Below, piece after piece: positions 10,201-56,631 of a stretch of 64,000 nt of DNA (its first letter is position 1; the number at the start of each line of letters is the position of its first letter). Below the pieces are notes generated by a model. That model was not told where the DNA came from. It worked only from the letters and a program-made list of their open reading frames with translations, and did not search any database. Origin of the DNA: Leucoraja ocellata (Eukaryota); the NCBI GenBank assembly GCA_036785375.1, contig JAWMAR010000508.1, positions 992,001 to 1,056,000 of the forward strand, in the 5' to 3' direction. The position numbers were made by a program, and so were the translations under genes.

Positions 10201-10313
10201 TCATTTGTTGCGACAACACGCTGCCCAGACGATTACAGGAACTACGCCTATGAAGATGACGGCAAGAACGATCAGGGCCACGATGCATATCCAGGACCTT
10301 TCCGAGCCACGTG
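10201..10313 (-). CDS. Siglec-like cassette A, transmembrane exon ending in a stop
   Basis: (S)RGSERSWICIVALIVLAVIFIGVVPVIVWAACCRNK*. The TGA at 10203-10201 is followed immediately by a donor-like g|gtgcgg. Confidence 0.82.
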
Positions 10314-10392
10314 CTGAGGGGTGGAGAAAGCAGTCAATGTAAGCCCAGCTCTGAGAAACAGACACGACAACATAACCTCAACTCCAGCCCAG

Positions 10393-11250
10393 ACCGGCGC
10401 GACTCTCGTCAGCAGCGGCCTCTGCAGCCCGTCTGCGTTTTTATTATTTTTTGTCTATGTTTCTATGTAGTTTTTGTTATTTTTTGTTGGGGTGTGTGTG
10501 TGTGGGGGGGTGGGGGTGGGGTGGGAGGGAGGGGGTAACTTTTTAATCTCTCCCTGCACGGGAGACCCGACCTTTTCTTTATCGGGTCTCCGTTGTCGTT
10601 GGGGCTGCAACGAGGAGCGGCCTCCAACAGGAGAAGACCGGGGGCTCTGGTGCCGACGACTCGCCTCACCGTCGCGGAGCTGGCCGAGTCCGGAGCGGGT
10701 GGAGCGGTGGTCGAGCGCTGCTGCTGCTGCGGCGCGACCTCCGGAGATTCGGAGCCTGCAACTGCGGGTCTGGCGGACGGCGGCACCGGGAGCCCGCGGG
10801 TCCCTGGAGGGAGATCGCTTTTCAGGCTCCCGCAACGGCGACTTCTCCCGCCCGAGTTGCGGGGTTGAAGAGCTCCTGGAGCGGGGCCTTACATCAAAGC
10901 CCCGTGCGGCTTGGAATGGCCACGGGACTCTGCGAGTGCACGCCGGGGGCTCTAACATCAAGACCCGGTGTGCGACCTTGCATCAACCGGCGTGGCTTTA
11001 ATGGCCGCGGGACAATCGCCATCGCCAGCCGGGGGCTTTGACTTTGACTGTGACATCGGGGGGGGGGGGGGGGGGGGAGTGCAGTGGAGAAATAAGTTTT
11101 TTTGGCATTCCATCACAGCAATGTGATGGATGTTTATGTAAATTATGTTGTGTCTTGGGTCTATTTGTTTGTAATGTATGGCTGCAGAAACGGCATTTCG
11201 TTTGGACCTCAAGGGGTCCAAATGACAAACAAATTGAATCTTGATCTTGA
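10393..11250 (+). mobile_element. GC-rich non-autonomous retroposon (copies at 24765-25410, 28460-29327, 53014-53660, 56715-57578; fragment at 8845-9057)
   Basis: CpG-rich body with no coding domain, and a 3' end aatgacaaacaaattgaatcttgatcttgat resembling Rex1/L2-type tails. It occurs at several sites. Confidence 0.7.
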
Positions 11251-11357
11251 TTAGCAATAAGGAGTTTTAAGGGCACAGACGGGTTATGAAACCACCAAAA
11301 TGGATAACCTCACATTTATGATGTTTTGAGGGGATATGACAGTCTGTGTCTACTCAC

Positions 11358-11639
11358 ATTCTACAGTGAGGGTCACATCCCTCTCTGCTGTCCCGTGTTT
11401 ATTCTCTGCCACACACTGATAGACCCCAGCATCCTGCCATGTCAGCTGAGGGAACTCCATCCACAGCTCGTTGTTGGAACGTGTTGTGTTCAGCGTGACA
11501 CCGAGATGTCTCCACGTCAGGTTAGATGCTGGGAAACTCTGGACGGAGCAGAGGATCGCTGCAGAGTTTCCTTCCTTTACACTGACCCAGGAACTGTTCA
11601 CGTAATCGGGGGAAGTGATTGAGAGATTCCGCGGGGCAT
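11358..11639 (-). CDS. Siglec-like cassette A, Ig domain 4 exon
   Basis: 282-nt phase1-1 exon, a close paralog of the domain 3 exon, with canonical splice sites. Confidence 0.9.
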
Positions 11640-11692
11640 CTACAAACAGATAAAATTCAGCAATCAGTTTTGTGGCACTTCCATGATTAACA

Positions 11693-12722
11693 ATGTTACA
11701 AAATTTTGAGATTTAAAAAATCAAGTCTGTAATTTATCCCATCAGATAAAGCATACAAAGATGTTTAATTTGACACCTAATTCACTTTCATATCTCAAGT
11801 ATTTAAAAAGTTATGGCCATTTTCATACTCGGAAATTAGCATCTTGTTCCCTATTGATTTTCTATGGACATAACAAAAAAGCTGTGATCGCGTGCTGTCA
11901 AAAGGCCATAACCTTCTTAAAAATTAAGAGAACTGAATGAAATTTTCAGTTATCGTAGATTGAAGCATTCTGAAACAAATATAAAATAATCTTACTTGGA
12001 TGACCTGAAATTAAAACATATAATTAGTTAGTTACCCAAGTGTAGCAAATTTCAAACTTCAATTACTAGATCTAAACATCTATCCATTTCTTAATAAATG
12101 ATTAACATTTTTAAATAGCCCAAGTGTCCAAATAATATTCATAAATAATTCACAATACAATATGATTTTGAAATCTCATTTACATTAATTTATAGGCCAA
12201 ATGGAAGGAATTTAGTGTTCAATTGCTGCAAATTAAAGTCCATTTAAATCAGCTTTCTAGTGGGTTCCTGTGGAACGCGCTGGTTTAGAACGTTCACATT
12301 GCGCTGGATTTGTGCCTCAAATGCCCAGAAAAACACTGCGGGATATAAAGAGCCCAAAATGACCTACTCGCTATAGAAAACTTTGTATAAAGGGTTCTTA
12401 AGAAGCCCCTTTTTAATGTAAAAATAAGGTACATACCTTTAATTGTTTGCTTTATAAAACCCTGGGGCTGCGAGAGGTCGCGGGTTTAGTGAGTGATTTT
12501 TAAACTACTATAACTATTATACAAGGCCATAAAAACTAATAATACCTTTTGCGACGGGGTATTTCAGCGATTTTTCGTTAATGATTTACTAGGCTGAACA
12601 TTTTCGATTGGAACAGCCTAGTAAAAATCCGCTTTTAAACCCGCCCCCTCTAAACAGCGCCAAACTCTCACACACGGGCTGGGGCAGATTCTCAATGACG
12701 CTTCAGTTAGGTTTTGTAACAT
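11693..12722. mobile_element. About 1.03-kb AT-rich non-autonomous DNA element with 11-bp inverted repeats (copies at 29769-30778 and 58020-59047)
   Basis: ATGTTACAAAA at 11693-11703 and TTTTGTAACAT at 12712-12722. No ORF and no clear TSD. Confidence 0.6.
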
Positions 12723-13270
12723 ACCTACACAATAGTCTATGTTTAGGGAAATGAGAGATAGACAATGGTGTAGAGAGATAAAGAACAATGATTGAATGAT
12801 GAGCAAAAAAAGTAACCATGATAAAGGAAACAGGCCATTGTTCGCTGTTTGTTGGATGAGAACGAGAAGCTGGTGCGACTTGGGCGGGGGAGAGATAGAG
12901 AGATGGTGGCCGACTAGGAAAGAGTGAGATGCAGCGAGACCTGGGTGTCATGGTACATCAGTCATTGAAGGTAGGCATGCAGGTGCAGCAGGCAGTGAAG
13001 AAAGCGAATGGTATGTTAGCTTTCATAGCAAAAGGATTTGAGTATAGGAGCAGGGAGGTTCTACTGCAGTTGTACAGGGTCTTGGTGAGACCACACCTGG
13101 AGTATTGCGTACAGTTTTGGTCTCCAAATCTGAGGAAGGACATTATTGCCATAGAGGGAGTGCAGAGAAGGTTCACCAGACTGATTCCTGGGATGTCAGG
13201 ACTGTCTTATGAAGAAAGACTGGATAGACTTGGTTTATACGCTCTAGAATTTAGGAGATTGAGAGGGGAT

Positions 13271-15080
13271 CTTATAGAAACTTACAAAATTCTTAAGGGG
13301 TTGGACAAGCTAGATGCAGGAAGATTGCTCCCGATGTTGGGGAAGTCCAGGACAAGGGGTCACAGCTTAAGGATAAGGGGGAAATCCTTTAAAACCGAGA
13401 TGAGAAGAACTTTTTTCACACAGAGAGTGGTGAATCTCTGGAACTCTCTGCCACAGAGGGTAGTCGAGGCCACAGTTCATTGGCTATATTTAAGAGGGAG
13501 TTAGATGTGGCCCTTGTGGCTAAGGGGATCAGGGGGAATGGAGAGAAGGCAGGTACGGGATACTGAGTTGGATGATCAGCCATGATCATATTGAATGGCG
13601 GTGCAGGCACGAAGGGCCAAATGGCCTACTCCTGCACCTAATTTCTATGTTTCTATGTTTCTATGAAACGTCACCCTATTTCTACTCTCCAGAGATGCTG
13701 CCTGTCCCGCTGAGTTACTCCAGCTTTTTTGTGACTCTCTTCAGTTTAAACCAGCACCTGCAGTTCCTTCCTACACATTGTGGCTGCTGCACTGCGAAAT
13801 CTCCTCAAGGCATGTCTACTTTGAAGAAAATCTCCTCTTTCTGACAAGAGAGAGTCGTAGGGTGATAGTGTGGAAACAGGCCCTTAGGCCTAACTTGCCC
13901 ACACCGGCCAACATGTCCCAGATACACTAGTGCCACCTGCCCACATTGGCCCATATCCTACCAAACTTGTCGTATCCATATACCTGTCTAACTGTTTCTT
14001 AAACGTTGGGATAACTCCCTGACTTAACTACCTCCTCTGGCAGCTCATTCCATACACCAACTTCCCTTTGTGTGAACAAGTCACCCCTCAGGTTCCTATT
14101 AAATATTTTCCCTTCACCTTGAACTTATGTCTTATAGAAACTTACAAAATTCTTAAGGAGTTGGACAGGCTAGATGCAGGAAGATTGTTCCCGATGTTGG
14201 GGAAGTCCAGGACAAGGGGTCACAAATTAAGGATAAGGGGGAAATCCTTTAAAACCGAGATGAGAAGAACTTTTTTCACACACAGAGTGGTGAATCTCTG
14301 GAACTCTCTGCCACAGAGGGTAGTCGAGGCCACAGTTCATTGGCTATATTTAAGAGGGAGTTAGATGTGGCCCTTGTGGCTAAGGGGATCAGGGGGTATG
14401 GAGAGAAGGCAGGTACGGGATACTGAGTTGGATGATCAGCCATGATCATATTGAATGGCGGTGCAGGCACGAAGGGCCAAATGGCCTACTCCTGCACCTA
14501 ATTTCTATGTTTCTATGTTTCTATGAAACGTCACCCTATTTCTACTCTCCAGAGATGCTGCCTGTCCCGCTGAGTTACTCCAGCTTTTGTGTGACTCTCT
14601 TCAGTTTAAACCAGCACCTGCAGTTCCTTCCTACACATTGTGGCTGCTGCACTGCGAAATCTCCTCAAGGCATGTCTACTTTGAAGAAAATCTCCTCTTT
14701 CTGACAAGAGAGAGTCGTAGGGTGATAGTGTGGAAACAGGCCCTTAGGCCTAACTTGCCCACACCGGCCAACATGTCCCAGATACACTAGTGCCACCTGC
14801 CCACATTGGCCCATATCCTACCAAACTTGTCGTATCCATATACCTGTCTAACTGTTTCTTAAACGTTGGGATATCTCCCTGACTTAACTACCTCCTCTGG
14901 CAGCTCATTCCATACAACAACTTCCCTTTGTGTGAACAAGTCACCCCTCAGGTTCATATTAAATATTTTCCCTTCACCTTGAACTTATGTCTTATAGAAA
15001 CTTACAAAATTCTTAAGGAGTTGGACAGGCTAGATGCAGGAAGATTGTTCCCGATGTTGGGGAAGTCCAGGACAAGGGGT
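13271..15080 (+). repeat. 860-bp tandem duplication (CR1 3' end + SINE + CR1 pieces), about 2.1 copies
   Basis: ORFs at 13572/14432 and 14068/14928 recur at an exact 860-bp period. Also present in C (about 59.6-61.4 kb) and absent in B. Confidence 0.85.
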
Positions 15081-15775
15081 GAAGAAAGCGAATGGTATGT
15101 TAGCTTTCATAGCAAAAGGATTTCAGTATAGGAGCAGGGAGGCTCTACTGCAGTTGTACAGGGTCTTGGTGAGACCACACCTGGAGTATTGCGTACAGTT
15201 TTGGTGTCCAAATCTGAGGAAGGACATTATTGCCATAGAGGGAGTGCAGAGAAGGTTCACCAGACTGATTCCTGGGATGTCAGGACTGTCTTATGAAGAA
15301 AGATTGGATAGACTTGGTTTATACTCTCTAGAATTTAGGAGATTGAGAGGGGATCTTATAGAAACTTACAAAATTCTTAAGGGGTTGGACAGGCTAGATG
15401 CAGAATGATTGCTCCCGATGATGGGGAAGTCCAGGACAAGGGGTCACAGCTTAAGGATAAGGGGGAAATCCTTTAAAACCGAGATGAGAAGAACTTCTTT
15501 CACACAGAGAGTGGTGAATCTCTGGAACTCTCTGCCACAGAGGGTAGTTGAGGCCACAGTTCATTGGCTATATTTAAGAGGGAGTTAGATGTGGCCCTTG
15601 TGGCTAAGGGGATCAGTGGGTATGGAGAGAAGGCAGGTACGGGATACTTAGTTGGATGATCAGCCATGATCATATTGAATGGCGGTGCAGGCTCGAAGGG
15701 CCGAATGGCCTCTACTCCTGCACCTAATTTCTATGTTTCTATGTTTCTAGGACATGTCAGTGTGTGTCTACTCAC

Positions 15776-16057
15776 ATTCTACAGTGAGGGTCCCATTCCT
15801 CTCTGCTGTCCCGTGTTCATTCTCTGCCACACACTGATAGACCCCAGCGTCCTGCCATGTCAGCTGAGAGAACTCCATCCACAGTTCGTTGTTGGAACGT
15901 GTTGTGTTCAGCGTGGCACCGAGATGTCTCCACGTCAGGTTAGATGTTGGGAAACTGTGGACAGAGCAGAGGATCGCTGGAGAGTTTCCTTCATTTATAC
16001 TGACCCAGGAACTGTTCACGTCATCGGGGGAAGTGATTGATAGATTCTGGGGGGCGT
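15776..16057 (-). CDS. Siglec-like cassette A, Ig domain 3 exon
   Basis: 282-nt phase1-1 exon with the B-strand Cys, C-strand Trp and DAGVYQC motif, and canonical splice sites. Confidence 0.9.
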
Positions 16058-16718
16058 CTACAAACAGATAAAATTCAGCAATCAGTTTTGTGGCACTTAC
16101 ATAGAAACATAGAAATTAGGTGCATGAGTATGCCGTTCGGCCCTTCGAGCCTGCACCGCCATTCAATATGAACATGGCTGATCATCCAACTCAGTATCCA
16201 GTACCTGCCTTCTCTCCATACCCCCTGAGCCCCTTAGCCACAAGGGCCACATCTAACTCCCTCTTAAATATAGCCAATGAACTGTGGCCTCGACTACCCT
16301 CTGCGGCAGAGAGTTCCAGAGATTCACCACTCTCTGTGTGAAAAAACGTTCTTCTCATCTCGGTTTTAAAGGATTTCCCCCTTATTCTTAAGCTGTGACC
16401 CCTTGTCCTGGACTTCCCCAACATCGGGAGCAATCTTCCTGCATCTAGCCTATCCAACCCCTTAAGAATTTTGTAAGTTTCTATAAGATCCCCTCTCAAT
16501 TACCTAAATTCTAGAGAGTATAAACCAAGTCTATCCAGTCTTTCTTCATAAGACAGTCCTGACATCCCAGGAATCAGTCTGGTGAACCTTCTCTGCACTC
16601 CCTCTATGGCAAGAATGTCCTTCCTCAGATTTGGAGACCAAAACTGTACGCAATACTCCAGGTGTGGTCTCACCAAGACCCTGTACAACTGCAGTAGAAC
16701 CTCCCTGCTCCTATACTC

Positions 16719-17795
16719 CTATGGGAGAAGCCAGAGGGTAATGGTGGATGGCTGTTTTTCGGGTTGGAGGCAGTTGATTAGTGGGGTGCCTCGGGGACCT
16801 GTGTTGGGTCCTTTTTTGTTTGTCATGTACATCAATGATCTGGATGAAGGTGTGGTAAATTGGATTAGTAAGTATGCAGATGATACCAAGATAGGGGGAG
16901 TTGTGGATAATGAAGAGGATTTCCAAAGTCTACAGAGTGATTTAGGCCATTTGGAAAAATGGGCTGAAAGATGGCAGATGGAGTTTAATGCTGATAAATG
17001 TGAGGTGCTACACCTTGGCAGGACAAATCAAAATAGGACGTACATGGTAAATGGTATGGAATTGAAGAATACAGTTGAACAGAGGGATCTGGGTATAACC
17101 GTGCATAGTTCCTTGAAGGTGGAATCGCATATAGATAGGGTGGGAAAGAAAGCTTTTGGTATGCTAGCCTTTATAAATCAGAGCATTGAGTATAGAAGCT
17201 GGGATGTAATGTTAAAATTGTACAAGGCATTGGTGAGACCAAATCTGGAGTATGGTGTACAATTTTGGTCGCCCAATTATAGGAAGGATGTCAACAAAAT
17301 AGAGAGAGTACAGAGGAGATTTACTAGAACGTTGCCTGGGTTTCAACAACTAAGTTACAGAGATAGGTTGAATAAGTTAGGTCTTTATTCTCTGGAGCGC
17401 AGAAGGTTAAGGGGGGACCTGATAGAGGTCTTTAAAATGATGAGAGGGATAGACAGAGTTGATGTGGACAAGCTTTTCCCTTTGAGAATAGGGAAAATTC
17501 AAACAAGAGGACATGACTTCAGAATTAAGGGACAGAAGTTTAGGGGTAATATGAGGGGGAACTTCTTTACGCAGAGAGTGGTGGCGGTGTGGAATGAGCT
17601 CCCAGTGGAAGTGGTGGAGGCAGGTTCATTGGTATCATTTAAAAATAAATTGGATAGGCATATGGATGAGAAGGGAATGGAGGGTCATGGTATGAGTGCA
17701 GGCAGGTGGGACTAAGGGGAAAAAATTGTTCGGCATGGACTTGTACGGCCGAGATGGCCTGTTTCCGTGCTGTAATTGTTATATGGTTATATGGT
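16719..17795 (+). mobile_element. CR1 LINE with RT domain, nested inside a minus-strand CR1 (16098-17935)
   Basis: GVPRGPVLGPFLFVMYINDL...SKYADDTKIGG in an open frame. TSD-like tatactc at 16712-16718 and 17796-17802. Confidence 0.9.
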
Positions 17796-18112
17796 TATAC
17801 TCAAATCCTTTTGCTATGAAAGCTAACATACCATTCGCTTTCTTCACTGCCTGCTGCACCTGCATGTCTACTTTCAATGACTGGTGTACCATGACACCCA
17901 GGTCTCGCTGCATCACCCCTTTTCCTAGTCGGCCACCAGGTTATGGGGAGAAGGCAGGAGAAAGGGGTTAGGAGGGAGAAATAGATCAGCCGTGATTGAC
18001 TGGCGGAGTGGACTTGATGGCCTAGTTCTGCTCATATCGCCTATGACCTTGTATACCAGCACTGCTAATGGATTATTGCTGTTCCTCCACAATGAACGAT
18101 CTCCGTACTTAC

Positions 18113-18406
18113 ATTGAACAGCCATTGTGAGGATCTGCTCGGATGAGACTGCTGGGTATGCGACTCTGCAGGTGAGGTTTTGCCCGTGATGTTTGAGTGC
18201 TGGGGTCAGGTACAGAACAGAAGTATATGTCAGAGTGTCTCCCTGCTGAGTTACGCTGCGTGAGGCTAACGGCGGTTCATCAGCGGGGGTGACCCAGGTT
18301 AAGGTGGGGGCTGTTCCATCACACGTGGTGTAGAAGGAGCAGGTCATGTTCACAGGCCGACCTGCCACCATTTCAGCAGGGAATATCGTGGGTTTATCTG
18401 TGAAAT
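18113..18406 (-). CDS. Siglec-like cassette A, domain 2 (C2-set) exon
   Basis: 294-nt phase1-1 exon, (D)FTDKPTIFPAEMVAGRPVNMTCSFYTTCDGTAPTLTW...SVLYLTPALKHHGQNLTCRVAYP...VQ. The extra Cys after the B-strand Cys is typical of Siglec domain 2. Confidence 0.92.
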
Positions 18407-21346: not shown

Positions 21347-21712
21347 CAATAACACGGAGCTGTGTTGGAGGGTGGTAGTTGTAACGATTTCCATCTCCAA
21401 AATCAACTCTGAAAAAATAAGGACCTGTATCTTGCTGCCTGACGTTGTCTATAACCAGGGAACAGTCCTTGTCTCTCAGGAATCCTGACAGCCGGGTCCG
21501 ATGCTGAAACTGTGTTGATATTACACTGGGATACCTGGAGTGGAAGGCTACAGACCGATGGTTCTGTGTCTCACTGTTATACCAGATTCCAGTCCGTGGT
21601 TTTTTATTTAGATACGACGGGTGCCTGTACTGACACGGAATCCGTGCACACAGGCCATTCTGCGCTGTCACATGTGGTGGATCCCACGGTCTCCACTGTC
21701 CCGACACCACGG
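21347..21712 (-). CDS. Siglec-like cassette A, V-set sialic acid-binding domain exon
   Basis: 366-nt phase1-1 exon. It has an N-terminal Trp, a B-strand C-x4-C (GLCARIPC), an E-strand Cys (DCSL), the F-strand YFFR arginine in place of the usual Ig F-strand Cys, and G-strand aromatics (RYNY). Confidence 0.93.
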
Positions 21713-21849
21713 CTGAGGAGAGAAGGAACAATCTTTAGCAGTGAACACCCTGTCAGTTCACTGGACTCACTCTCCACACATTTTATCCTGCGCTGTGGGC
21801 CTGGTGTGTACAGAGCGGGGAAGAGTGGCGTGGTGGTGTAGTGGTAGAG

Positions 21850-22670: not shown

Positions 22671-22915
22671 AGGGACAAGTAGAGTTTCCCTTGTGGCCAG
22701 GGCCCGGAGCGCAAGGAGCACCGCCACTCCACCTCGGGCCCATAGGGGGAGGAGTGACTCTGCTGTCAGCGACCGAAGGACTGGTGATGGGATCTAGGGA
22801 GTTGGCAGGGCCGAAGATGGCCTGGCTGGGTTGCTCCTGGGCCTGGCCAAGCTGGCCATCCGCGAGTCACGGTGCCAGGCGGAAGAGGGCTTTGCCTGAA
22901 CAGTTGCTTGCATCT
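22670..22915 (+). mobile_element. Tx1-like ORF2 C-terminal remnant (paralog at 38465-38712)
   Basis: EDGLAGLLLGLAKLAIRESRCQAEEG, homologous to the 4107-4582 element. Confidence 0.65.
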
Positions 22916-24389
22916 TTGCGGTGACCGATTAGGAAAAGAGGAGATGCAGCGAGACCTGGGTGTCATGGTACAACAGTCCTTGAAAGTAGGCATGCAGGTG
23001 CAGCAGGCAGTGAAGAAAGCGAATGGTATGTTAGCATTCATAGCAAAAGGATTTGAGTCTAGGAGCAGGGAGGTTCTACTGCAGTTGTACAGGGTCTTGG
23101 TCCCTTCTTCAGACTGGGGGAATAGAGGGTAGAAAATTGGAAATGCAAAGTCATAGTCATAGAGTGATACAGGGTGGAAACGGGCCCTTCGGCCCAACTT
23201 GCCCACACTGGCAAACATGTCCCAGCTACGCTAGTCCCACCTACCCAAGTTTGGTTCATATCCCTCCAAACCTGTCCTACCCATATACATAGAAACATAG
23301 AAAACATAGAAATTAGGTGCAGGAGTAGGCCATTCGGCCCTTCGAGCCTGCACCGTCATTCAATATGATCATGGCTGATCATCCATCTCAGTATCCTGTA
23401 CCTGCCTTCTCTCCATACCCCCTGATCCCCTTAGTCACAAGGGCCACATCTAACTCCCTCTTAAATATAGCCAATGAACTGGCCTCAACTACCCCTTGTG
23501 GCAGAGAGTTCCAGAGATTCACCACTCTCTGTGTGAAAAAAGTTCTTCTCATCTCGGTTTTAAAGGATTTCCCCCTTATCCTTAAGCTGTGACCCCTTGT
23601 CCTGGACTTCCCCAACATCGGGAGCAATCTTACTGCATCTAGCCTGTCCAACCCCTTAAGAATTTTGTAAGTTTCTATAAGATTCCCTCTCAGTCTCCTA
23701 AATTCTAGAGAGCATAAACCAAGTCTATCCAGTCTTTCTTCATAAGACAGTCCTGACATCCCAGGAATCAGTCTGGTGAACCTTCTCTGCACTCCCTCTA
23801 TGGCAAGAATGTCCTTCCTCAGATTTGGAGACCAAAACTGCAATACTCCAGGTGTGGTCTCACCAAGACCCTGTACAACTGCAGTAGTACCTCCCTGCTC
23901 CTATACTCAAATCATTTTGCTATGAATATCCCTGTCTGTGTATAACAGCCCTATCGAAATATATGCTCGCATTGAGTTTGCTCTCTATATTAGCATTATC
24001 ACTATAACTTATGAAGTGGCAGAAACTCGAGAGGCCCAACGACCTCTTGATATATGAGGAAATAGACAGAAGTTGTGACAGGAAATCTAGTGCTAAAAAT
24101 GAAAATGTTCTTTCACAGAATGATGGGAAATGTATCGCAGAGTTCCCCAAAGCTGAGGGTGCATAACACTCCCTTTAATGCTTTTAATGTATTTTAATTT
24201 TTAATTTAATGTAATTTAATTTAATTTAATAACACTCCCTTTAATGCTTTTAATGTCTTTTTAATTTTTACTGTTTTTATAGTCTTATGTGGTCTTAATG
24301 GTTTTAGTAGTTTGTAATAACTTTTTGTTGACTTCCCATGTACAGCACTTTGTGGTAACTGATGTTGTCTAAAAGCGCTTTATAAATAA

Positions 24390-24430
<41 letters not shown>

Positions 24431-27400
24431 TCGAGCAAACAAATGCTGGGGGAACTCGGCGGATCTGGGGGTGGTTAGACACAAAGGGCTGGAGTAACTC
24501 AACGGGATGGGCAGCATCTCTAGAGAGGAGGATTTCGTGTCGAGGGTGACATTTCAGACTGAGAGTCAGGGGAGAGGGAAATGAGAGATATGGACGGTGA
24601 TGTATATATAGAAGAAATGAATGAAATATGCAAAATAAGTAACAATGGTAAAGGAAACAGGCCGTTGTTAGCGATTTACTATGTGAGAACGAGAAGCTGG
24701 TGCAACTTGGGTGGGGGAGGGATGGAGAGAGGGGAAACGCAGGGGTTACTTGAAGTTACTTGAAGGCGGTAGGCAGCGCGACTCTCGTCAGCAGCGGCCT
24801 CTGCAGCCCGTCCGCGTTTTTTATTATTTTTGTCTATGTTTTTATGTAGTTTTGTTATTTTTTGTTGGGGTGTGTGTGTGGAGGAGGTGGGGGTGGGGTG
24901 GGAGGGAGGGGGTAACATTTAAATCTCTCCCTGCACGGGAGACCCGACCTTTTCTTTGTCGGGTCTCCGTTGTCGTTGGGGCTGCAACGAGGAGCGGCCT
25001 CCAACAGGAAGACCGGGGGCTCTGGTGCCGACGACTCACCTCACCGTCGAGTCCGTAGCGGGTGGAGCGGTGGTGGAGCGCTGCTGCTGCTGCGGCCCGA
25101 CCTCCGGAGAATCGGAGGCTGCAACTGCGGGTCTGGCGGACGGCGGCACTGGGAGCCCGCGGGTCCCTGGAGGGAGACCGCTTTTCAGGGCTCTCGCAAC
25201 GGCGACTTCTCCCGCCCGAGCTGCGGGGTCGAAGAGCTCCTGGAACGGGGCCTGACATCACCGCCCCGCGCGGCTTGGATTGGCCGCGGGACTCTGCGAG
25301 CGCACGCCGGGGTCTCCAACATCAAGAACCCGGTGTGCGACCTTGCATCACCCGGCGTGGCTTTACCCGGCGTGACATCGGGGGGGGGGGGAGTGCAGTG
25401 GAGAAATAAGTTTCATCAGTCTGAAGATGCATCAGTCTGAAGAAGGGTTTCGTCCCGAAACGTTGCCTATTTCCTTCGCTCCATAGATGCTGCTGCACCC
25501 GCTGAGTTTCTCCTGCAATTTTGTGTACCTAAAATCCTTAAGGGGTTGGACAGGCTAGATGCAGGAAGATTGCTCCCGATGTTGGGGAAGTCCAGGACAA
25601 GGGGTCACAGCTTAAGGATAATGGGGAAATCCTTTAAAACCGAGATGAGAAGAACTTTTTACACACAGGAAGTGGTGAATATCTGGAACTCTCTGCCACA
25701 GAGGGTAGTCGAGGCCAGTTCATTGGCTATATTTAAGAGGGAGTTAGATGTGGCTAAGGGGATCAGAGGGTATGGAGAGAAGGCAGGTACGGGATACTGA
25801 GTTGGATGATCAGCCATGATCATATTGAATGGCGGTGCAGGCTCGAAGGGCCGAATGGCCTACTCCTGCACCTAATTTATATGTTTCTATGTTTCTATGA
25901 AAAGAGCGCCCTTTAATTCTGAGGCTGTGCCCTCTGGTCTTAGACTCTCCCACCAGTGGAAACATCCTCTCCACATCCACTCTATCCAGGCCTTTCACTA
26001 TTCTGTACGTTTCAATGAGGTACTCCCCTCATCATTCTAAACTCCTGCGAGTACAGGCCCAGTGCCTCAAGCACTCATCATATGCTAACCCTCTCATTCC
26101 TGGGATCATTCTTGTAAACCTCCCCTGGACTCTCTCCAAGAAACAGGAAGGGGCTGGAGGGGAGGGAGTTCGAGCCCGGGGAGGGGTGGCGTGGGAGGGG
26201 GGTGGTATATGGGAGTGAATGGTGTTAGGTTAGGTAAGGGGGGAGGTGCAGCGAGACCTGGGTGTCCTTGTACACCGGTCACTGAAAGTTGGCGTGCAGG
26301 TACAGCGGGCAGTGAAGAAAGCTAATGGAATGTTGGCCTTCATAACAAGAGGATTTCAGTACAGGAGTAAAGAGGTTCTTCTGCAGTTGTATAGGGCTCT
26401 GGTGAGACCACATCTAGAGTATTGTGTACAGTTTTGGTCTCCTAATTTGAGGAAGGACATTCTTGTGATTGAGGCAGTGCAGCGTAGGTTCACGAGATTG
26501 ATCCCTGGGATGGCGGGACTGTCCTATGAGGAAGGATTGAAAAGACTATGCTTGTATTCACTGGAGGTTAGAAGGATGAGGGGGGAAAGCTTTTCCAACT
26601 GAGAGTAGGGAAGATTCAAACAAGGGGACATGACTTGAGAATTAAGGGACTGAAGTTTAGGGGTAACATGAGGGGGAACTTCTTTACTCAGAGAGTGGTG
26701 GCTGTGTGGAATGAACTTCCAGTGAAGGTGGTGGAGGCATGTTCGTTTTTACCATTTAAAAATAAATTGGATAGTTATATGGATGAGAAGGGAATGGAGG
26801 GTTATGGTATGAGTGCAGGCAGGTGGGACTAAGGGAAAAAAAGTTGTTCGGTACGGACTTGTAGGGCTGAGATGGCCTGTTTCCGTGCTGTAATTGTTAT
26901 ATGGTTATATGGTTATGAGTTCTCATGTACAGCACTTTGTGGCAACTGCAGTTGTTTAAAGTGCTTTATAAATAAAGTTATTATTATTATATGAAAGTCC
27001 TGCCATCCCAGGAATCAGTCTGGTGAACCTTCTCTGTACTCCCTCTATGGCAAGAATGTCTTTCCTCAGATTAGGAGACCAAAACTGTACGCAATTCTCC
27101 ACGTGTGGTCTCACCAAGACCCTGTACAACTGCAGTAGAACCTCCCTGCTCCTATACTCAAATCCTTTTGCTATGATCCTTTTGCCGCATCAGCAAAAAC
27201 GACATAATCTGCGAACAATCTCCGTGCTGTTACCAATCCTTCACTCCCACTGTCCCCACTCCACATGGACCAAAACTCCAACCCCAATCTATCTCAGTCC
27301 ACACTCCCATCTCCTCCCCATTCCCTCCCACCATGGAGCAAAACTCTCTCCCACTCCCCACACTGACTATAGACCCAATCACCTCCCCACTCTCTCCTCA

Positions 27401-28263
27401 CGGATCCAACCCCTTCCCACATGTCACAATAAACTAAAAAGTAACTAAACTCTACTCCATCCCAGCGTCGGGATGTCAGGGCTTTCATATGAAGAAAGAT
27501 TGGATAGACTCGGCTTGTACTCGCTAGAATTTAGAAGATTGAGGGGGGATCTTATAGAAACGTACGACATTCTTAAGGGGTTGGACAGGCTAGATGCAGC
27601 AAGATTGTTCCTGATGTTGGGGAAGTCCAGAACAAGGGGCCACACAGTTTAAGGATAAGGGGGAAATCTTTTAGGACAGAGATGAGAAAAGCATTTTTCA
27701 CACACAGAGAGTGGTGAATCTGTGGAATTCTCTGCCACAGAAGGTAGTTGAGGCCACAGTTCATTGGCTATATTTAAGAGGGAGTTAGATGTGGCCCTTG
27801 TGGCTAAGGGGATCAGGGGGTATGGAGAGAAGTCAGGTACAGGATACTGAGTTGGATGATCAGCCATGATCATATTGAATGGCGGTGCAGGCTCGAAAGG
27901 CCGAATGGCCTCTACTCCTGCACCTAAATTGAATGTTTCTATGTTTCTATGAAAGGTTCAGAGAGATATGGGCCAAATGGGACTTATTTAGATGGGACAC
28001 TTGGACGAGTTGGGCCGAATGGCACCTATTGTCTATGTTTCTATGTCTATGGATGAGATAGAAACATCAGGTCCAGGATACTTGGGCAATCTGCCCTGCC
28101 CCTCTCCCAGACACAGTGGTAGCGGTGGGGAGGGGGGGGGGGGGGGTTATGATTGGAGAGGGCCCTGATTTTAGGCTGACGCAGTGTCTACCTCCCCTCT
28201 TTCTCGTTCTGGTGAGTAAATGGCAGTGAAGACATTCGGACAGTTTCCAGATCATCCCGCACC

Positions 28264-28376
28264 TCATTTGTAGCTACAACACGCTGGCCAGACGATTACA
28301 GGGACTACGCCTATGAAGATGACGGCAAGAACGATCAGGGCCACGATGCATTTCCAGGACCTTTCCGAGCCACGTA
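28264..28376 (-). CDS. Siglec-like cassette B, transmembrane exon ending in a stop
   Basis: Acceptor ctccacccctcag| then (L)RGSERSWKCIVALIVLAVIFIGVVPVIVWPACCSYK*. Confidence 0.8.
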
Positions 28377-29433: not shown

Positions 29434-29715
29434 ATTCTACAGTGAGGGTCACATCCCTCTCTGCTGTCCCGTGTTTATTCTCTGCCACACACTGATAGAC
29501 CCCAGCATCCTGCCATGTCAGCTGAGGGAACTCCATCCACAGCTCGTTGTTGGAACGTGTTGTGTTCAGCGTGACACCGAGATGTCTCCACGTCAGGTTA
29601 GATGCTGGGAAACTCTGGACGGAGCAGAGGATCGCTGCAGAGTTTCCTTCCTTTACACTGACCCAGGAACTGTTCACGTAATCGGGGGAAGTGATTGAGA
29701 GATTCCGCGGGGCAT
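29434..29715 (-). CDS. Siglec-like cassette B, Ig domain 4 exon
   Basis: 282-nt phase1-1 exon, (Y)APRNLSI...ILCSVQSFP...DAGVYQCVAENKHG...LTVE, with canonical splice sites. Confidence 0.9.
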
Positions 29716-31752: not shown

Positions 31753-32034
31753 ATTCTACAGTGAGGGTCCCATTCCTCTCTGCTGTCCCGTGTTCATTCT
31801 CTGCCACACACTGATAGACCCCAGCGTCCTGCCATGTCAGCTGAGAGAACTCCATCCACAGTTCGTTGTTGGAACGTGTTGTGTTCAGCGTGGCACCGAG
31901 ATGTCTCCACGTCAGGTTAGATGTTGGGAAACTGTGGACAGAGCAGAGGATCGCTGGAGAGTTTCCTTCCTTTATACTGACCCAGGAACTGTTCACGTCA
32001 TCGGGGGAAGTGATTGATAGATTCTGGGGGGCGT
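31753..32034 (-). CDS. Siglec-like cassette B, Ig domain 3 exon
   Basis: 282-nt phase1-1 exon, (Y)APQNLSI...ILCSVHSFP...W...DAGVYQCVAEN...LTVE, with tttgtag acceptor and gtgagt donor. Confidence 0.9.
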
Positions 32035-34104
32035 CTACAAACAGATAAAATTCAGCAATCAGTTTTGTGGCACTTACATAGAAACATAGAAATTAGGTGC
32101 AGGAGTATGCCGTTCGGCCCTTCGAGCCTGCACCGCCATTCAATATGAACATGGCTGATCATCCAACTCAGTATCCAGTACCTGCCTTCTCTCCATACCC
32201 CCTGAGCCCCTTAGCCACAAGGGCCACATCTAACTCCCTCTTAAATATAGCCAATGAACTGTGGCCTCGACTACCCTCTGCGGCAGAGAGTTCCAGAGAT
32301 TCACCACTCTCTGTGTGAAAAAAACGTTCTTCTCATCTCGGTTTTAAAGGATTTCCCCCTTATTCTTAAGCTGTGACCCCTTGTCCTGGACTTCCCCAAC
32401 ATCGGGAGCAATCTTCCCTGCATCTAGCCTATCCAACCCCTTAAGAATTTTGTAGTTTCTATAAGATCCCCTCTCAATTACCTAAATTCTAGAGAGTATA
32501 AACCAAGTCTATCCAGTCTTTCTTCATAAGACAGTCCTGACATCCCAGGAATCAGTCCTGGTGAACCTTCTCTGCACTCCCTCTATGGCAAGAATGTCCT
32601 TCCTCAGATTTGGAGACCAAAACTGTACGCAATACTCCAGGTGTGGTCTCACCAAGGACCCTGTACAACTGCAGTAGAACCTCCCTGCTCCTATACTCCT
32701 ATGGGAGAAGCCAGAGGGTAATGGTGGATGGCTGTTTTTCGGGTTGGAGGCAGTTGATTAGTGGGGGTGCCTCAGGGACCTGTGTTGGGTCCTTTGTTGT
32801 TTGTCATGTACAATCAATGATCTGGATGAAGGTGTGGTAAATTGGATTAGTAAGTATGCAGATGATACCAAGATAGGGGGGAGTTGTGGATAATGAAGAG
32901 GATTTCCAAGTCTACAGAGTGATTTAGGCCATTTGGAAAAATGGGCTGAAAGATGGCAGATGGAGTTTAAATGCTGATAAATGTGAGGTGCTACACCTTG
33001 GCAGGACAAATCAAAATAGGACGTACATGGTAAATGGTATGGAATTGAAGAATACAGTTGAACAGAGGGATCTGGGTATAACGTGCATAGTTCCTTGAAG
33101 GTGGAATCTCATATAGATAGGGTGGGAAAGTAAGCTTTTGGTATGCTAGCCTTTATAAATCAGAGCATTGAGTATAGAAGCTGGGATGTAATGTTAAAAT
33201 TGTACAAGGCATTGGTGAGACCAAATCTGGAGTATGGTGTACAATTTTGGTCGCCCAATTATAGGAAGGATGTCAACAAAATAGAGAGAGTACAGAGGAG
33301 ATTTACTAGAACGTTGCCTGGGTTTCAACAACTAAGTTACAGAGATAGGTTGAATAAGTTAGGTCTTTATTCTCTGGAGCGCAGAAGGTTAAGGGGGGGA
33401 CCCTGATAGAGGTCTTTAAAAATGATGAGAGGGATAGACAGAGTTGATGTGGACAAGCTTTTCCCTTTGAGAATAGGGAAGATTCAAACAAGAGGACATG
33501 ACTTCAGAATTAAGGGACAGAAGTTTAGGGGTAATATGAGGGGGAACTTCTTTACGCAGAGAGTGGTGGCGGTGTGTGGAATGAGCTCCCAGTGGAAGTG
33601 GTGGAGGCAGGTTCATTGGTATCATTTAAAAATAAATTGGATAGGCATAATGGATGAGAAGGGAATGGAGGGTCATGGTATGAGTGCAGGCAGGTGGGAC
33701 TAAGGGGAAAAAATTGTTCGGCATGGACTTGTACGGCCGAGATGGCCTGTTTCCGTGCTGTAATTGTTATATGGTTTATATGGTTATACTCAAATCCTTT
33801 TGCTATGAAAGCTAACATACCATTCGGTTTCTTCACTGCCTGCTGCACCTGCATGTCTACTTTCAATGACTGGTGTACCATGACACCCAGGTCTCGCTGC
33901 ATCACCCCCTTTTTCCTAGTCGGCCACCAGGTTATGGGGAGAAGGCAGGAGAAAGGGGGTTAGGAGGGAGAAATAGATCAGCCGTGATTGACTGGCGGAG
34001 TGGACTTGATGGCCTAGTTCTGCTCATATCGCCTATGACCTTGTATACCAGCACTGCTAATGGATTATTGCTGTTCCTCCACAATGAACGATCTCCGTAC
34101 TTAC

Positions 34105-34399
34105 ATTGAACAGCCATTGTGAGGATCTGCTCGGATGAGACTGTTGGGTATAGCGACTCTGCAGGTGAGGTTTTGCCCGTGATGTTTGAGTGCTGGGGTC
34201 AGGTACAGAACAGAAGTATATGTCAGAGTGTCTCCCTGCTGAGTTACGCTGCGTGAGGCTAACAGCGGTTCATCAGCGGGGGTGACCCAGGTTAAGGTGG
34301 GGGCTGTTCCATCACACGTGGTGTAGAAGGAGCAGGTCATGTTCACAGGCCGACCTGCCACCATTTCAGCAGGGAATATCGTGGGTTTATCTGTGAAAT
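34105..34399 (-). pseudogene. Siglec-like cassette B, domain 2 (C2-set) exon with a 1-nt insertion frameshift
   Basis: 295 nt versus 294 nt in cassette A. An extra base near 34152 (gggtatagcg vs gggtatgcg) shifts the frame after TCRVA. It lies in an indel-rich stretch, so it may be an assembly error. Confidence 0.8.
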
Positions 34400-37339
34400 C
34401 TAACACACACAGAAACAGATACAGTTAGTTAAATATAACAAGATACCTCAGTTCACATGGTAATCCCAGTCCCGCACGAGGAAGAATGTTTTTACAAGGT
34501 ACAGAAGTGTGAAAACACACACCTCCAGATTATCAAGGACCAGTCTCACTTCCTCTCCCCCTCCTCTCCCACCGGTCAAAAGGTACTAGAATGTTGCCTG
34601 GGTTTCAACAACTAAGTTACAGAGATAGGTTGAATAAGTTAGGTCTTTATTCTCTGGAGCGCAGAAGGTTAAGGGGGGACTTGATAGAGGTCTTTAAAAT
34701 GATGAGAGGGATAGACAGAGTTGATGTGGACAAGCTTTTCCCTTTGAGAATAGGGAAGATTCAAACAAGAGGACATGACTTCAGAATTAAGGGACAGAAG
34801 TTTAGGGGTAATATGAGGGGGAACTTCTTTACTCAGAGAGTGGTAGCTGTGGCAAAAAAATGTTGGTGGCAAAAACAGGAAAGCAGACTATTATCTAAAT
34901 GGTGGCCGACTAGGAAAAGGGGAGATGCAGCGAGACCTGGGTGTCATGGTACACCAGTCATTGAAGGTAGGCATGCAGGTGCAGCAGGCAGTGAAGAAAG
35001 CGAATGGTATGTTAGCTTTCATAGCAAAAGGATTTCAGTATAGGAGCAGGGAGGTTCTACTGCAGTTGTACAGGGTCTTGGTGAGACCACATCTGGAGTA
35101 TTGCGTACAGTTTTGGTGCCCAAATCTGAGGAAGGACATTATTGCCATAGAGGGAGTGCAGAGAAGGTTCACCAGACTGATTCCTGGGATGTCAGGACTG
35201 TCTTATGAAGAAAGACTGGATAGACTTGGTTTATACTCTCTAGAATTTAGGAGATTGAGAGGGGATCGTATAGAAACTTACAACACTCTTAAGGGGTTGG
35301 ACAGGCTAGATGCAGGAAGATTGCTCCCGATGTTGGGGAAGTCCAGGACAAGGGGTCACAGCTTAAGGATAAGGGGGAAATCCTTTAAAACCGAGATGAG
35401 AAGAACTTTTTTTTCACACAGAGAGTGGTGAATCTCTGGAACTCTCTGCCGCAGAGGGTAGTCGAGGCCAGTTCATTGGCTATATTTAAGAGGGAGTTAG
35501 ATGTGGCCCTTGTGGCTAAGGGGATCAGAGGGTATGGAGAGAAGGCAGGTACGGGATACTGAGTTGGCTGATCAGCCATGATCATATTGAATGGCGGTGC
35601 AAGCTCGAAGGGCCGAATGGCCTACTCCTGCACCTAATTTCTATGTTTCTATGTTTCTATGTCTAAGACAATTCCCCATATCTCCGAGCCTGTCTCGAAG
35701 GCAAACCAGGCTAAAATACTGAACCTGGCTCAACACACTTCTGGCCAAATCCCAACCTTATTGGAATACTAGCAATGTCCAGTTTTACCTGGTTAAATTG
35801 CCTCCGACAATGTCTCAATCATTTGAGTATTGTACAGCCAATTGTAAATCTTAGCAACTTGTTCGTGGTCACTTAGTTGTAAAGTAACTCTGGTCAGCTT
35901 TCATGCTGATACCAGCTTCAGTGAACCGCTTACTGCCGATGAAGCCGTGGGGTGCGTTGTCCACGAAACTATGAAGCCTTCCTCGTCATTGACCTAATTG
36001 GTCTAACAGTTTTGCTTCCTCCTTCAGGTTTTGCCTGTAGAATAGGTATTACCTGAATAGAAGATTCGGCAGGTGGCTGTAACGTCCCCTGATAATGGTC
36101 TTCACTGCATTGTGTTGGGTGGCAACCTTACTGCCAGGAATCGTACCTCTGACACATGCCCTCCATCCCTTGAGGTATGCCCCACGCTATACCCTCAGCC
36201 TCGGCATCAGATTTACACTGACCCGGCATGTTCTCCTCCTCCTCCATAAGGGAGACATTAAGCAGCCCTACTAAAAGGTGCAGCTGGCGCGGCCTCTCAA
36301 ACAGGCCCACCCTTCAGGGTCAGAACTTAGAAACATAGAAACATATAAATTAGGTGCAGGAGTAGGCCATTCGGCCCTTCGAGCCTGCACCGCCATTCAA
36401 TATGATCATGGCTGATCATCCAACTCAGTATCCCGTACCTGCCTTCTCTCCATACCCTCTGATCCCCTTAGCCACAAGGGCCACATCTAACTCCCTCTTA
36501 AATATAGCCAATGAACTGTGGCCTCGACTACACTCTGCGGCAGAGAGTTCCACAGATTCACCACTCTCTGTGTGAACAAAGTTCTTCTCATCTCGGTTTT
36601 AAAGGATTTCCCCCTTTAAGAGGGAGTTAGATGTGGCCCTTGTGGCTAAGGGGATCAGGGGGTATGGAGAGAAGGCAGGTACGGGATATTGAGTTGGATG
36701 ATCAGCCATGATCATTTTGAATGGCGAATGGTGCAGGCTCAAAGGGCCGAATGGCCTCTACTCCTGCACCTAATTTCTATGTATCTATGTTTCTATATAA
36801 CCATATAACAATTACAGCACGGAAACAGGCCATCTCGACCCGTCTAGTCCGTGCTGAACACATATTCTACCCTAGTCCCATATACCTGCGCTCAGACCAT
36901 AACCTTCCATTCCCTTCCCGTCCATATAACTATCCAATTTATTTTTAAATGATAAAAACGAACCTGCCTCCACCACCTTCACTGGAAGCTCATTCCACAC
37001 TGCTACCACTCTCTGAGTAAAGAAGTTCCCCCTCATGTTACCCCTAAACTTCAGTCCCTTAATTCTCAGGTCATGTCCCCTTGTTTGAATCTACCCTACT
37101 CTCAGTGGGAAAAGCTTTTCCACATCAACTCTGACTATCCCTCTCATCATTTCAAAGACCTCTATCGAGTCCCCCCTTAACCTTCTGCGCTCCAAAGAAT
37201 TAAGCCCTAACTTGTTCAACCTTTCTCTGTAACTTAGTTGCTGAAACCCAGGCAACATTCTAGTAAATCTCCTCTGTACTCTCTCTAACAGCTGGGAAGA
37301 AACTGTTGAGTGAATGAGTGAATTATACGGGACACTTAC

Positions 37340-37705
37340 CAATAACACGGAGCTGTGTTGGAGGGTGGTAGTTGTAACGATTTCCATCTCCAAAATCAAC
37401 TCTGAAAAAATAAGGACCTGTATCTTGCTGCCTGACGTTGTCTATAACCAGGGAACAGTCCTTGTCTCTCAGGAATCCTGACAGCCGGGTCCGATGCTGA
37501 AACTGTGTTGATATTACACTGGGATACCTGGAGTGGAAGGCTACAGACCGATGGTTCTGTGTCTCACTGTTATACCAGATTCCAGTCCGTGGTTTTTTAT
37601 TTAGATACGACGGGTGCCTGTACTGACACGGAATCCGTGCACACAGGCCATTCTGCGCTGTCACATGTGGTGGATCCCACGGTCTCCACTGTCCCGACAC
37701 CACGG
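37340..37705 (-). CDS. Siglec-like cassette B, V-set sialic acid-binding domain exon
   Basis: 366-nt phase1-1 exon (ctcctcag| ... |gtaagt) encoding GLCARIPC, RTRLSGFLRDKDCSL, DTGPYFFRVD, NRYNY. Protein is identical to cassette A. Confidence 0.92.
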
Positions 37706-39468
37706 CTGAGGAGAGAAGGAACAATCTTTAGCAGTGAACACCCTGTCAGTTCACTGGACTCACTCTCCACACATTTTATCCTGCGCTGTGGGCCTGGTGT
37801 GTACAGAGCGGGGAAGAGTGGCGTGGTGGTGTAGTGGTAGAGCCTCACTCCTCACCCCCCCCCCCCCCCTCACACAGTCCGTCACTCCCTCTTCACCCCC
37901 CCCCCCTCACACAGTGTGTCACTTCCACCTCCCCCCCACAGTGTGTGTCACTCCCTACAACAGTGCATCACTCCCTCCCACAGTATGTCACTCCTCAACA
38001 CCCCCCCACAGTGCATCACTCCATCCTCACCCCCTCCCACAGTGCGTCGCTCCCTCTTCACCGTCCCCTCCCCCACAGTGCGTTACTCCCTCTTCACTGC
38101 GCCTCCCACACTGCATCACTCCCTCCCACAGCGCATCACTCCCTCCCACACTGATCTCTCCTCCCACAGTGCATCACTCCCTCCTCACCGCCCCTCCCAC
38201 ACTGCATCACTCCTCTCACAGTGTCTCACTCCCTCCTCACCCCCCCTCCCACAGTGCGTCACTCCCTCTCACAGTGCATCACTCCCTCCCACACTGCATC
38301 ACTCCTCTCACAATGCATCGCTCCCTCCTCACCCCCCCCCTCCCACAGTGCATCACTCCCTCCCACAGTGTCTCACTCCCTCCTCACCGCCCCTCCCACA
38401 GTGCGTTACTCCCTCCCACAGTGCATCACTCCCTCCTCACCGCACCTTCCACAGTGCGTCACTCCCAGGGACCAGTAGAGTTTCCCTTGTGGCCAGGGCC
38501 CGGAGCGCAAGGAGCACCGCCACTCCACCTCGGGCCCATAGGGGGAGGAGTGACTCTGCTGTCAGCGACCGAAGGACTGGTGATGGGATCTAGGGAGTTG
38601 GCAGGGCCGAAGATGGCCTGGCTGGGTTGCTCCTGGGCCTGGCCAAGCTGGCCATCCGCGAGTCACGGTGCCAGGCGGAAGAGGGCTTTGCCTGAACAGT
38701 TGCTTGCATCTTTGCGGTGACCGATTAGGAAAAGAGGAGATGCAGCGAGACCTGGGTGTCATGGTACAACAGTCCTTGAAAGTAGGCATGCAGGTGCAGC
38801 AGGCAGTGAAGAAAGCGAATGGTATGTTAGCATTCATAGCAAAAGGATTTGAGTCTAGGAGCAGGGAGGTTCTACTGCAGTTGTACAGGGTCTTGGTGAG
38901 ACCACACCTGGAGTATAGCGTACAGTTTTGGCCTCCTAATCTGAGGAAAGACATTCTTGCCATAGAGGGAGTGCAGAGAAGGTTCATCAGACTGATTCCT
39001 GGGATGTCAGGACTTTCATATGAAGAAAGACTGGATAGACTGGGCTTTAGAATTTAGAAGATTGAGGGGGGATCTAATAGGAACTTACAAAATTCTTAAG
39101 GGGTTGGACAGGCTAGATGCAGGAAGATTGTTCCCGATGTTGCGGAAGTCCAGGACAGGAGGGTCACAGTTTAAGAATAAAGGATAAATCTTTAAGGATA
39201 TGGGATGATGTTCCTCCAATTTGCATTTAGCCCCACTCTGACAGTAGAGGAGACCTAGGACAGAAAGGTCATTGTGAGAATGGGACGGGTGATTAAAGTG
39301 TTTGGCAACCGGGAGATCAGGTAGGTCCAGGCAGACTGAGCGAAGGTGTTCAGCGAAATGATCATAGCAGCCCCAGAACCGACCCCTGCGGAACTCCGCT
39401 AGTCACTGGCAGCCAACCACTAAAAGCCTCCTTGCCCGTAAACACTTCCGAGTTGCTGCTGGTGGTAC

Positions 39469-39508
39469 CTTGGAGAAGGGAGAGGAGGAAGAACGATCGC
39501 CCGATCAT
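39469..39508 (-). CDS. Siglec-like gene, signal peptide (leader) exon, coding part
   Basis: Minus strand reads tactttctcttccag|atcggg...ATG ATC GGG CGA TCG TTC TTC CTC CTC TCC CTT CTC CAA G|gtacca = MIGRSFFLLSLLQ plus a phase-1 G. Splicing to the V exon gives MIGRSFFLLSLLQAVVSG-QW, a typical signal peptide. The full exon including 5'UTR is 39469-39542. Confidence 0.85.
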
Positions 39509-39993
39509 TGTCCGATCCCCGATATCCCGTCAGTTACCCGATCTGGAAGAGAAAGTAATTGCAGTCAAACTCCAGCGACCAATATACATAAAACGAAACC
39601 GATGTAATGCTGAGGTTCTACAAGGCAGTGGTCAGGCCACATTTGGAATATTGTGTGCAATTTTGAGCCCCATATCAGATGAAGCACGTGCAGGCTCTGG
39701 ATGGGATCAGAGGAGGTTTATAGCAATGAGTGGGTTTACATACGATGAGCGTTTGACGGCACTGGGCCTTTACTCACTGGAGTTTAGAAGAATGAGGGGG
39801 GGACCTCAATGAAACTTACCGAACAGTGAAAGGCTTGGAGAGTGTGGATGTGGAGAGGATATTTCCACTAGTGGGAGAGGTCATAGTCTCAGAATTAAAG
39901 GATGTTCTTTTAGGAAGGGAATGACGTGGAATTTCTTTAGTCAGACGGTGGTGAATCTGTGGAATTCTTTGCCGCAGACGGCAGTGGAGGCCA

Positions 39994-56443: not shown

Positions 56444-56631
56444 CTACCTCCCCTCTTTCTCGTTCTGGTGAGTAAATGGCAGTGAAGACATTCGGACAGT
56501 TTCCAGATCATCCCGCACCTCATTTGTAGCTACACACGCTGGCCAGACGATTACAGGGACTACGCCTATGAAGATGACGGCAAGAACGATCAGGGCCACG
56601 ATGCATTTCCAGGACCTTTCCGAGCCACGTA
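56444..56631 (-). pseudogene. Siglec-like paralog C, transmembrane exon with a 1-nt deletion
   Basis: Same TM as B, but tgttgtagc becomes tgtgtagc. This bypasses the TGA and gives ...WPACVATNEVRDDLETVRMSSLPFTHQNEKEGR*. Confidence 0.7.

Follow-up and report, generated by a model that had tools for sequence, protein, structure and literature searches.

The stretch of Leucoraja ocellata DNA analyzed here (GenBank assembly GCA_036785375.1, contig JAWMAR010000508.1, positions 992,001 to 1,056,000; 64 kb, free of N, and called the window below) carries a minus-strand locus whose gene is, judged by its predicted domains and nearest solved relatives, of the Siglec type (I-type lectin). In gene order, one leader exon is followed by cassette B and then by cassette A, each composed of V, C2, Ig, Ig, and transmembrane (TM) exons. 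Every internal exon of A and B has an AG acceptor, a GT donor, and phase 1-1, the last being a general property of Ig-superfamily exons. Exon coordinates and splice sites agree with the layout proposed in an initial annotation, which had been made from the sequence alone. Exons were searched singly, and product lengths are sums of exon lengths. The exons of the leader and of the two complete cassettes are as follows.

39469..39508, minus strand, leader (signal-peptide) exon: ATG at 39508, 40 nt, MIGRSFFLLSLLQ plus 1 base, donor CAAG/gtacc at 39469
37340..37705, minus strand, V-set exon, cassette B: 366 nt, phase 1-1; Pfam V-set (5.7e-11) and Ig_CD22 (4.4e-07); 366/366 bases the same as in V-A
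34105..34399, minus strand, C2-set exon, cassette B: 295 nt; one extra base at 34152 shifts the frame
31753..32034, minus strand, Ig3 exon, cassette B: 282 nt; 1 substitution relative to A
29434..29715, minus strand, Ig4 exon, cassette B: 282 nt; identical to A
28264..28376, minus strand, TM exon, cassette B: 113 nt; ends CCSYK, then TGA; 6 differences from A
21347..21712, minus strand, V-set exon, cassette A: 366 nt
18113..18406, minus strand, C2-set exon, cassette A: 294 nt, frame intact; best solved relatives, CD33 and MAG domain 2
15776..16057, minus strand, Ig3 exon, cassette A: 282 nt
11358..11639, minus strand, Ig4 exon, cassette A: 282 nt; MAG domain 3 and contactins among the best solved relatives
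10201..10313, minus strand, TM exon, cassette A: 113 nt; ends AACCRNK, then TGA; three-residue tail

Leader plus cassette A sums to 40 + 366 + 294 + 282 + 282 + 113 = 1377 nt, or 458 codons plus a stop, which fits the product length given in the initial annotation. The sum of the leader, cassette B minus its TM exon, and cassette A is 2601 nt (866 aa, with the extra base of C2-B discounted), which would encode eight Ig domains. The TM exon contains the hydrophobic stretch WICIVALIVLAVIFIGVVPVIVWAA, with no Lys, Arg, or Asp in the TM segment, and the cytoplasmic tail consists of RNK (A) or SYK (B) followed directly by the stop.

Searches with the five exon peptides (tblastn, whole window) found two V, two C2, three Ig3, three Ig4, and three TM exons and no others. 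The leader was found once: leader DNA matched only itself in the window (blastn, word size 7), and the family-leader peptide motif, searched in degenerate form in six frames of the whole window, matched solely at 39508. A generic scan of 21713-28263 for an ATG, a hydrophobic stretch, and a phase-1 donor returned one site; at the rate seen across the window (33 sites in 128 kb), 1.7 would be expected. That site (ATG at 23307, donor after 23241) lies within a repeated element present at three other places and is unlike the family leader. These three tests agree with the initial annotation that cassette A has no leader of its own, and the search for a separate leader between 21712 and 28264, which by that annotation would have refuted its reading, came down to this one chance-level site. 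As read in DNA run X1 (see Transcripts and read coverage), the leader has a synonymous change at 39499.

Family membership

The V exon matched 31 PDB sequences, of which the 18 best were all Siglecs; its best solved relatives were MAG (1.7e-17), sialoadhesin, Siglec-5, CD33, and Siglec-10, -8, -7, and -15. The conserved F-strand arginine, which binds sialic acid in Siglecs, is present (YFFR aligned with YYFR of MAG), and the V cysteines in GLCARIPC and DCSLVI align with those in GTCVSIPC and NCTLLL of MAG. In the C2 exon, the cysteines of MTCS, TTCD, and LTCRV align to CD33 domain 2. Siglecs are defined by a pattern of three V-set cysteines, two of them near strand B and the third in strand E, with a further cysteine in domain 2. 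Pfam matches were C2-set_2 (6.5e-10) for the C2 exon and Ig_3/I-set for both Ig exons, and these C2-set and Ig domains are followed by a single transmembrane helix, as in the type I membrane proteins of the Siglec family. The Siglec-type assignment in the initial annotation is thus upheld by the solved relatives and the aligned arginine, and the V domain is predicted to bind sialic acid.

MAG (Siglec-4) is the best solved relative of the V exon and one of the best for the C2 and Ig4 exons. A conserved gene present in single copy, it encodes five Ig domains and a cytoplasmic tail; unlike MAG, the skate gene has four Ig exons per cassette, a three-residue tail (A), and three cassettes in 64 kb, so that neither the five Ig domains, nor the conserved tail, nor the single copy of a MAG ortholog was found. 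Mammalian CD33-related Siglecs form clusters that are fast-evolving tandem arrays with partial duplicates, gene conversion, and pseudogenes, and they signal through tails bearing an ITIM (immunoreceptor tyrosine-based inhibitory motif) or through a charged TM residue that pairs with DAP12. No ITIM, ITIM-like motif, or basic TM residue is present in the skate cassettes.

The V exon was searched against 1.84 billion representatives and had 891 relatives at an E value of ≤0.001. The top relatives were elasmobranch gene models labeled Siglec-8, -10, -12, -13, or MAG-like, and the elasmobranch family comprises well over 100 relatives. The nearest relative found was P0163, an NCBI gene model of Leucoraja erinacea named "myelin-associated glycoprotein-like," and follow-up searches with P0011 and P0163 among proteins of 252 to 801 aa (a range that leaves proteins of about 866 aa outside) returned nothing closer. 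P0163 has 458 aa, starts MIGRSFFLLSLLQAVVSGQW, and ends AACCRNK; its N terminus is identical to the leader peptide MIGRSFFLLSLLQ, and it shares the V-C2-Ig-Ig-TM order, the residues at the exon junctions, and the CCRNK end. Identity per exon is 91% for V, 93% for C2, 89 to 98% for the Ig exons, and 97% for TM. P0163 lies on a 30.7-kb contig and does not represent this locus; it is either a paralog or an ortholog in a different assembly. Because leader, junctions, and end are the same, P0163 validates the leader, all splice junctions (including the inner TM acceptor), and the stop, and with them the 458-aa exon model of leader plus A in the initial annotation.

The CCRNK end is common to P0163, P0210, and P0205; since P0205 is a model from Amblyraja radiata, the tail-less state is conserved in skates. 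Three Logan contigs of 1378 to 1550 nt encode a 365-aa paralog with three Ig domains and with leader and end as here, and from these transcript-size contigs it follows that tail-less mRNAs of the family type exist and are expressed somewhere. A short-protein search with the V exon for transcript fragments across exon borders gave one match among two candidates, a partial model from Amblyraja radiata at 68%. Among the papers listed in the openly accessible literature on Siglecs in cartilaginous fish, none was found to treat elasmobranch Siglec gene structure.

Tandem duplication

Cassettes A and B belong to two copies of one segment, 7559-23101 and 23102-38897, with the following features at and beside their junction.

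23100..23103, no strand, tandem-duplication junction between 23101 and 23102: intron-1 fragment of a long interspersed nuclear element (LINE) joined to spacer, 2-nt microhomology
23102..28022, minus strand, spacer, duplication copy 2, between TM-B and the junction: LINE fragments; 98.5% to 51352-56278; colinear with 7559-9964
7559..9964, minus strand, spacer, duplication copy 1, downstream of TM-A: shorter than copy 2, with deletions

Cassette A matches B through CTTGGT (23101), and beyond this point it matches the sequence following 7558, with only GT shared. The junction lies inside the leader-V intron, as the initial annotation had placed it. This pattern indicates that a segment reaching from the intergenic spacer to the intron-1 LINE fragment was duplicated head to tail. 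By self-comparison, A (9964-23101) resembles B (28022-38897), the spacer at 23097-28022 resembles 51352-56278 (downstream of partial cassette C, described below) at 98.5%, and 1804-8175 resembles 46098-51970.

A and B carry 40 substitutions over the 7783 aligned bases between Ig3 and the junction (0.51%). On the minus strand, C2-A and C2-B differ at 18271 (C) versus 34264 (T) and at 18152 (G) versus 34144 (A), and Ig3-A and Ig3-B at 15993 (T) versus 31970 (G). The 3' block differs more (55/3680, or 1.49%), mostly around the TM exon, and the spacer copies differ at 22 of 617 positions (3.6%). In the V exon about 1.9 differences were expected and none was seen; for exons versus introns, the extra conservation is within chance. 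Purifying selection on A, as an explanation of V and Ig4 exons identical to those of B, was rejected, the background divergence being just 0.5%. At this divergence the intact exons of A are expected and are therefore uninformative on its use. The V-A acceptor and the intron upstream of it have 1 mismatch to B in 310 aligned bases.

The 3' part of A and the spacer of B are each nearer to C than to their counterparts in B and A, which points to exchange among members of the array. The TM exon is the most divergent of the exons between A and B (6/113 nt; 10201-10313 versus 28264-28376), and relative to P0163 it is a mosaic in which A shares the C-terminal AACCRNK and B the N-terminal L..WK. This mosaic suggests gene conversion among paralogs. 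Cassettes A and C have in common a block of about 1.4 kb (13673-15079 in A) that B lacks.

Consensus quality in cassette B

The extra base at 34152 in C2-B relative to C2-A shifts the frame, which then hits a stop early in Ig3-B. In three-way alignments of A, B, and C, private small indels were 18 insertions and 4 deletions in B, 1 and 4 in A, and 0 and 6 in C, and private substitutions were similar in number (A, 30; B, 35; C, 46). Insertions private to B are of 1 to 2 nt, fall mostly in short homopolymers, and are clustered at about 30.0 to 34.6 kb. At 16582-17715 (A coordinates), 11 indel events in B break a LINE open reading frame (ORF) that is intact over 377 aa in A, so the B states are derived. 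With 22 indels against 35 substitutions, most of the indels being insertions, B departs from what evolution usually gives and looks like consensus error.

The base at 34152 falls within this noisy stretch of B and is missing from all homologs, as well as from the 3 of 3 DNA contigs of run X1 that cover the site (depth, 171.3 of 171.3). From this context the C2-B frameshift is probably an assembly consensus error, in which case leader plus B would be the ordinary product. The claim that A gives the only lesion-free product therefore probably rests on an error in the consensus of B. Poor assembly quality in the 30.0- to 34.6-kb part of B likely gives this cassette the false appearance of a pseudogene. 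Were the window part of the published little skate assembly, it would come from noisy continuous long reads (CLR) with two Racon rounds and one Illumina round (PMC10115646).

Transcripts and read coverage

Reads were compared with 34000-39600 (leader, V-B, and C2-B) using two oligo-dT RNA runs from one organism (organism B) and two DNA runs; from each RNA run 12.9 million reads, or about 5% of the total, were used. RNA depth was 0 on both V bins, 0 to 0.21 on the leader, and 0 to 0.2 on C2, no joints at exon borders were listed, and RNA coverage of the region was confined to LINE fragments. DNA contigs from the same organism match the unique parts at 98 to 99% (one such match, of 117 nt across the leader border, has 1 difference), so the species of the runs is probably right or very close. 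This RNA result neither favors nor rules against any splicing pattern.

Neither stop is followed within 1.3 kb by AATAAA or ATTAAA, the only candidate signals being weak variants at 386 to 499 nt. In run X1, summed depth on leader, V, and C2 over 34000-39600 was in the hundreds to thousands, and single pieces had depths of 17 to 60. These depths suggest tens of close family copies in that genome.

Interpretation

We read the locus, with a probability of about 0.6, as part of a birth-and-death array in which a canonical 458-aa tail-less Siglec-like gene (leader plus B) is followed by a partial duplicate that lacks a leader (A). The window would be part of a tandem array of tail-less Siglec-like genes, each of them leader-V-C2-Ig-Ig-TM with 458 aa. 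A head-to-tail duplication of about 15.5 to 15.8 kb would have copied the intergenic spacer through to a point inside intron 1 of one member, leaving cassette A downstream of B without promoter or leader. The ordinary gene product would then be leader plus B, and cassette A would most likely be a silent, intact partial duplicate, kept similar by its youth or by gene conversion; it would serve as raw material of birth-and-death evolution, not as a designed alternative cassette. Read in this way, the locus would illustrate the growth of the skate and ray Siglec-like family, in which a nonhomologous tandem duplication lost one leader and was followed by concerted evolution among array members. 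The duplicate has the look of routine turnover within a growing immune gene family, and nothing shows a special switching device.

Several points weigh against this interpretation. The 3.6% between the spacer copies may mean that the duplication predates the age suggested by the 0.5% divergence and that the cassette bodies were homogenized later. The junction is known from the assembly. That leader plus B is the product is an inference from position, no transcript having been seen for either cassette. With no strong poly(A) hexamer after B, read-through from B into A could occur. Finally, the X1 contigs that lack the 34152 base could stem from paralogs or from cassette A itself, and rare variants are lost in contigs.

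A different account holds that the leader is shared. Transcription would read through past TM-B, and the leader donor or the Ig4-B donor would splice to V-A, giving leader plus A (458 aa), an eight-Ig receptor with two lectin domains, or both. The exon phases are compatible with this, although phase 1-1 is generic to Ig exons, and cassette A is intact, although this is expected at 0.5% divergence. The near identity of the V-A acceptor and upstream intron to those of B (1 mismatch in 310), the lack of a strong poly(A) hexamer in the 1.3 kb that follow the stop of TM-B, and merged V-C2-Ig-Ig-V-C2-Ig models in other vertebrate annotations also speak for it. Those merged models, however, are computational and may be fusions of neighboring genes; the two RNA runs covered leader, V, and C2 at little or no depth; and the nearest acceptor (V-B) and terminal exon (TM-B) should take most transcripts. 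We consider a shared leader unlikely. The initial annotation had proposed a cassette-switching or length-variable receptor; the two RNA runs, with no depth on V and almost none on leader and C2, gave no transcript evidence for it. Somewhat less probable still is the specific form in which weak polyadenylation after TM-B lets one promoter and leader serve both cassettes, with leader plus A as one product and, by skipping of TM-B, an eight-Ig receptor with two V-sets as another. If true, one duplication would have given rise to a lectin of naturally variable length. Should read-through splicing be shown, a single step would have produced a new multilectin receptor; there is at present no sign of it.

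A receptor with two V-sets would have precedents of differing kinds. The initial annotation had called two V-set domains unusual among Siglecs, which holds for mammals, where two V-sets are rare and Siglec-12 (Siglec-XII) has them, according to the available text of PMC6288428; it does not hold for elasmobranch gene models, in which V-V to V-V-V-V arrangements are frequent. In a domain-order tally of 274 proteins, 263 had a qualifying match, and multi-V models were frequent among them (V-V, 22; V-V-C2, 15; V-V-C2-Ig, 7; V-V-V-C2, 6; V-V-V-V-C2, 3). Examples are the computational models P0001 of Hypanus sabinus (V-V-V-V-C2-TM) and P0002 of Scyliorhinus canicula (V-V-V-C2...). In Siglec-12 the V-sets are adjacent, whereas the two V-sets here would stand three Ig domains apart. 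The annotations of turtle, rodent, frog, and teleost contain merged models (V-C2-Ig-Ig-V-C2-Ig, for example), among them turtle P0036 (V-C2-Ig-Ig-V-C2-Ig) and rodent P0051 (V-C2-Ig-V-C2-Ig), both computational and at other loci.

It is also improbable, to much the same degree as the polyadenylation variant, that the duplication is false, with A and B being two haplotypes or read sets of one cassette set in tandem by the assembler. The excess of small insertions in B would suit a thinly supported consensus, a divergence of 0.5% is within the allelic range for an immune gene cluster, and a noisy CLR-based consensus could be added to these only if the window belongs to the published little skate assembly (accessible part of PMC10115646). 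The junction, on the other hand, shares just 2 nt, with no repeat overlap to mislead an assembler, and the window has no N. A and B also differ in structure, with the block of about 1.4 kb at 13673-15079 present in A and C only and spacers of 2.4 kb versus 4.9 kb, and parts of the spacers are 3.6% apart. That cassette A is instead an independent gene, with an unrecognized promoter and leader in the spacer, is very improbable: the single candidate (ATG at 23307), which begins with a hydrophobic stretch and has its phase-1 GT donor after 23241, is at chance level, belongs to a repeated element, and does not resemble the family leader.

Partial cassette C and other features

The initial annotation had not included a third, partial cassette.

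56278..64000, minus strand, partial cassette C, running off the window: TM at about 56520-56631, Ig4 at 57685-57966, Ig3 at 63250-63531

No further family exons were found downstream of C by tblastn in the window. TM-C has a private 1-nt deletion that removes the conserved stop, after which the frame runs through a donor-like GAG/GTGCGG. The deletion is either a real longer-tail variant or another consensus error. Cassette C as an ancestral form with downstream cytoplasmic exons was rejected, the deletion being private to C, homologs ending at the stop of A, and the tblastn search of the window having given no further family exons. Ig4-C differs from Ig4-A at 5 of 93 residues, though the flanking DNA is 98% alike.

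At the protein level, Ig3 and Ig4 of one cassette share 87% identity (A, with the corresponding exons of B and C), and judging by this likeness the pair are an exon duplication inside the gene. A tandemly repeated LINE-derived block of about 950 nt occupies the Ig3-Ig4 intron at 13270-15080 in A and 59595-61403 in C and is absent from B. The leader-V intron carries a C-rich minisatellite with a unit of about 20 nt (CCTCCCACAGTGCATCACTC) at 22014-22670 in A and 38072-38466 in B; its length differs between A and B, and it is the source of most gap columns between them. A second minisatellite, at 40244-41082, begins some 750 nt upstream of the ATG of the leader and has 36.5 copies of a 23-nt GC-rich unit with 89% matches.

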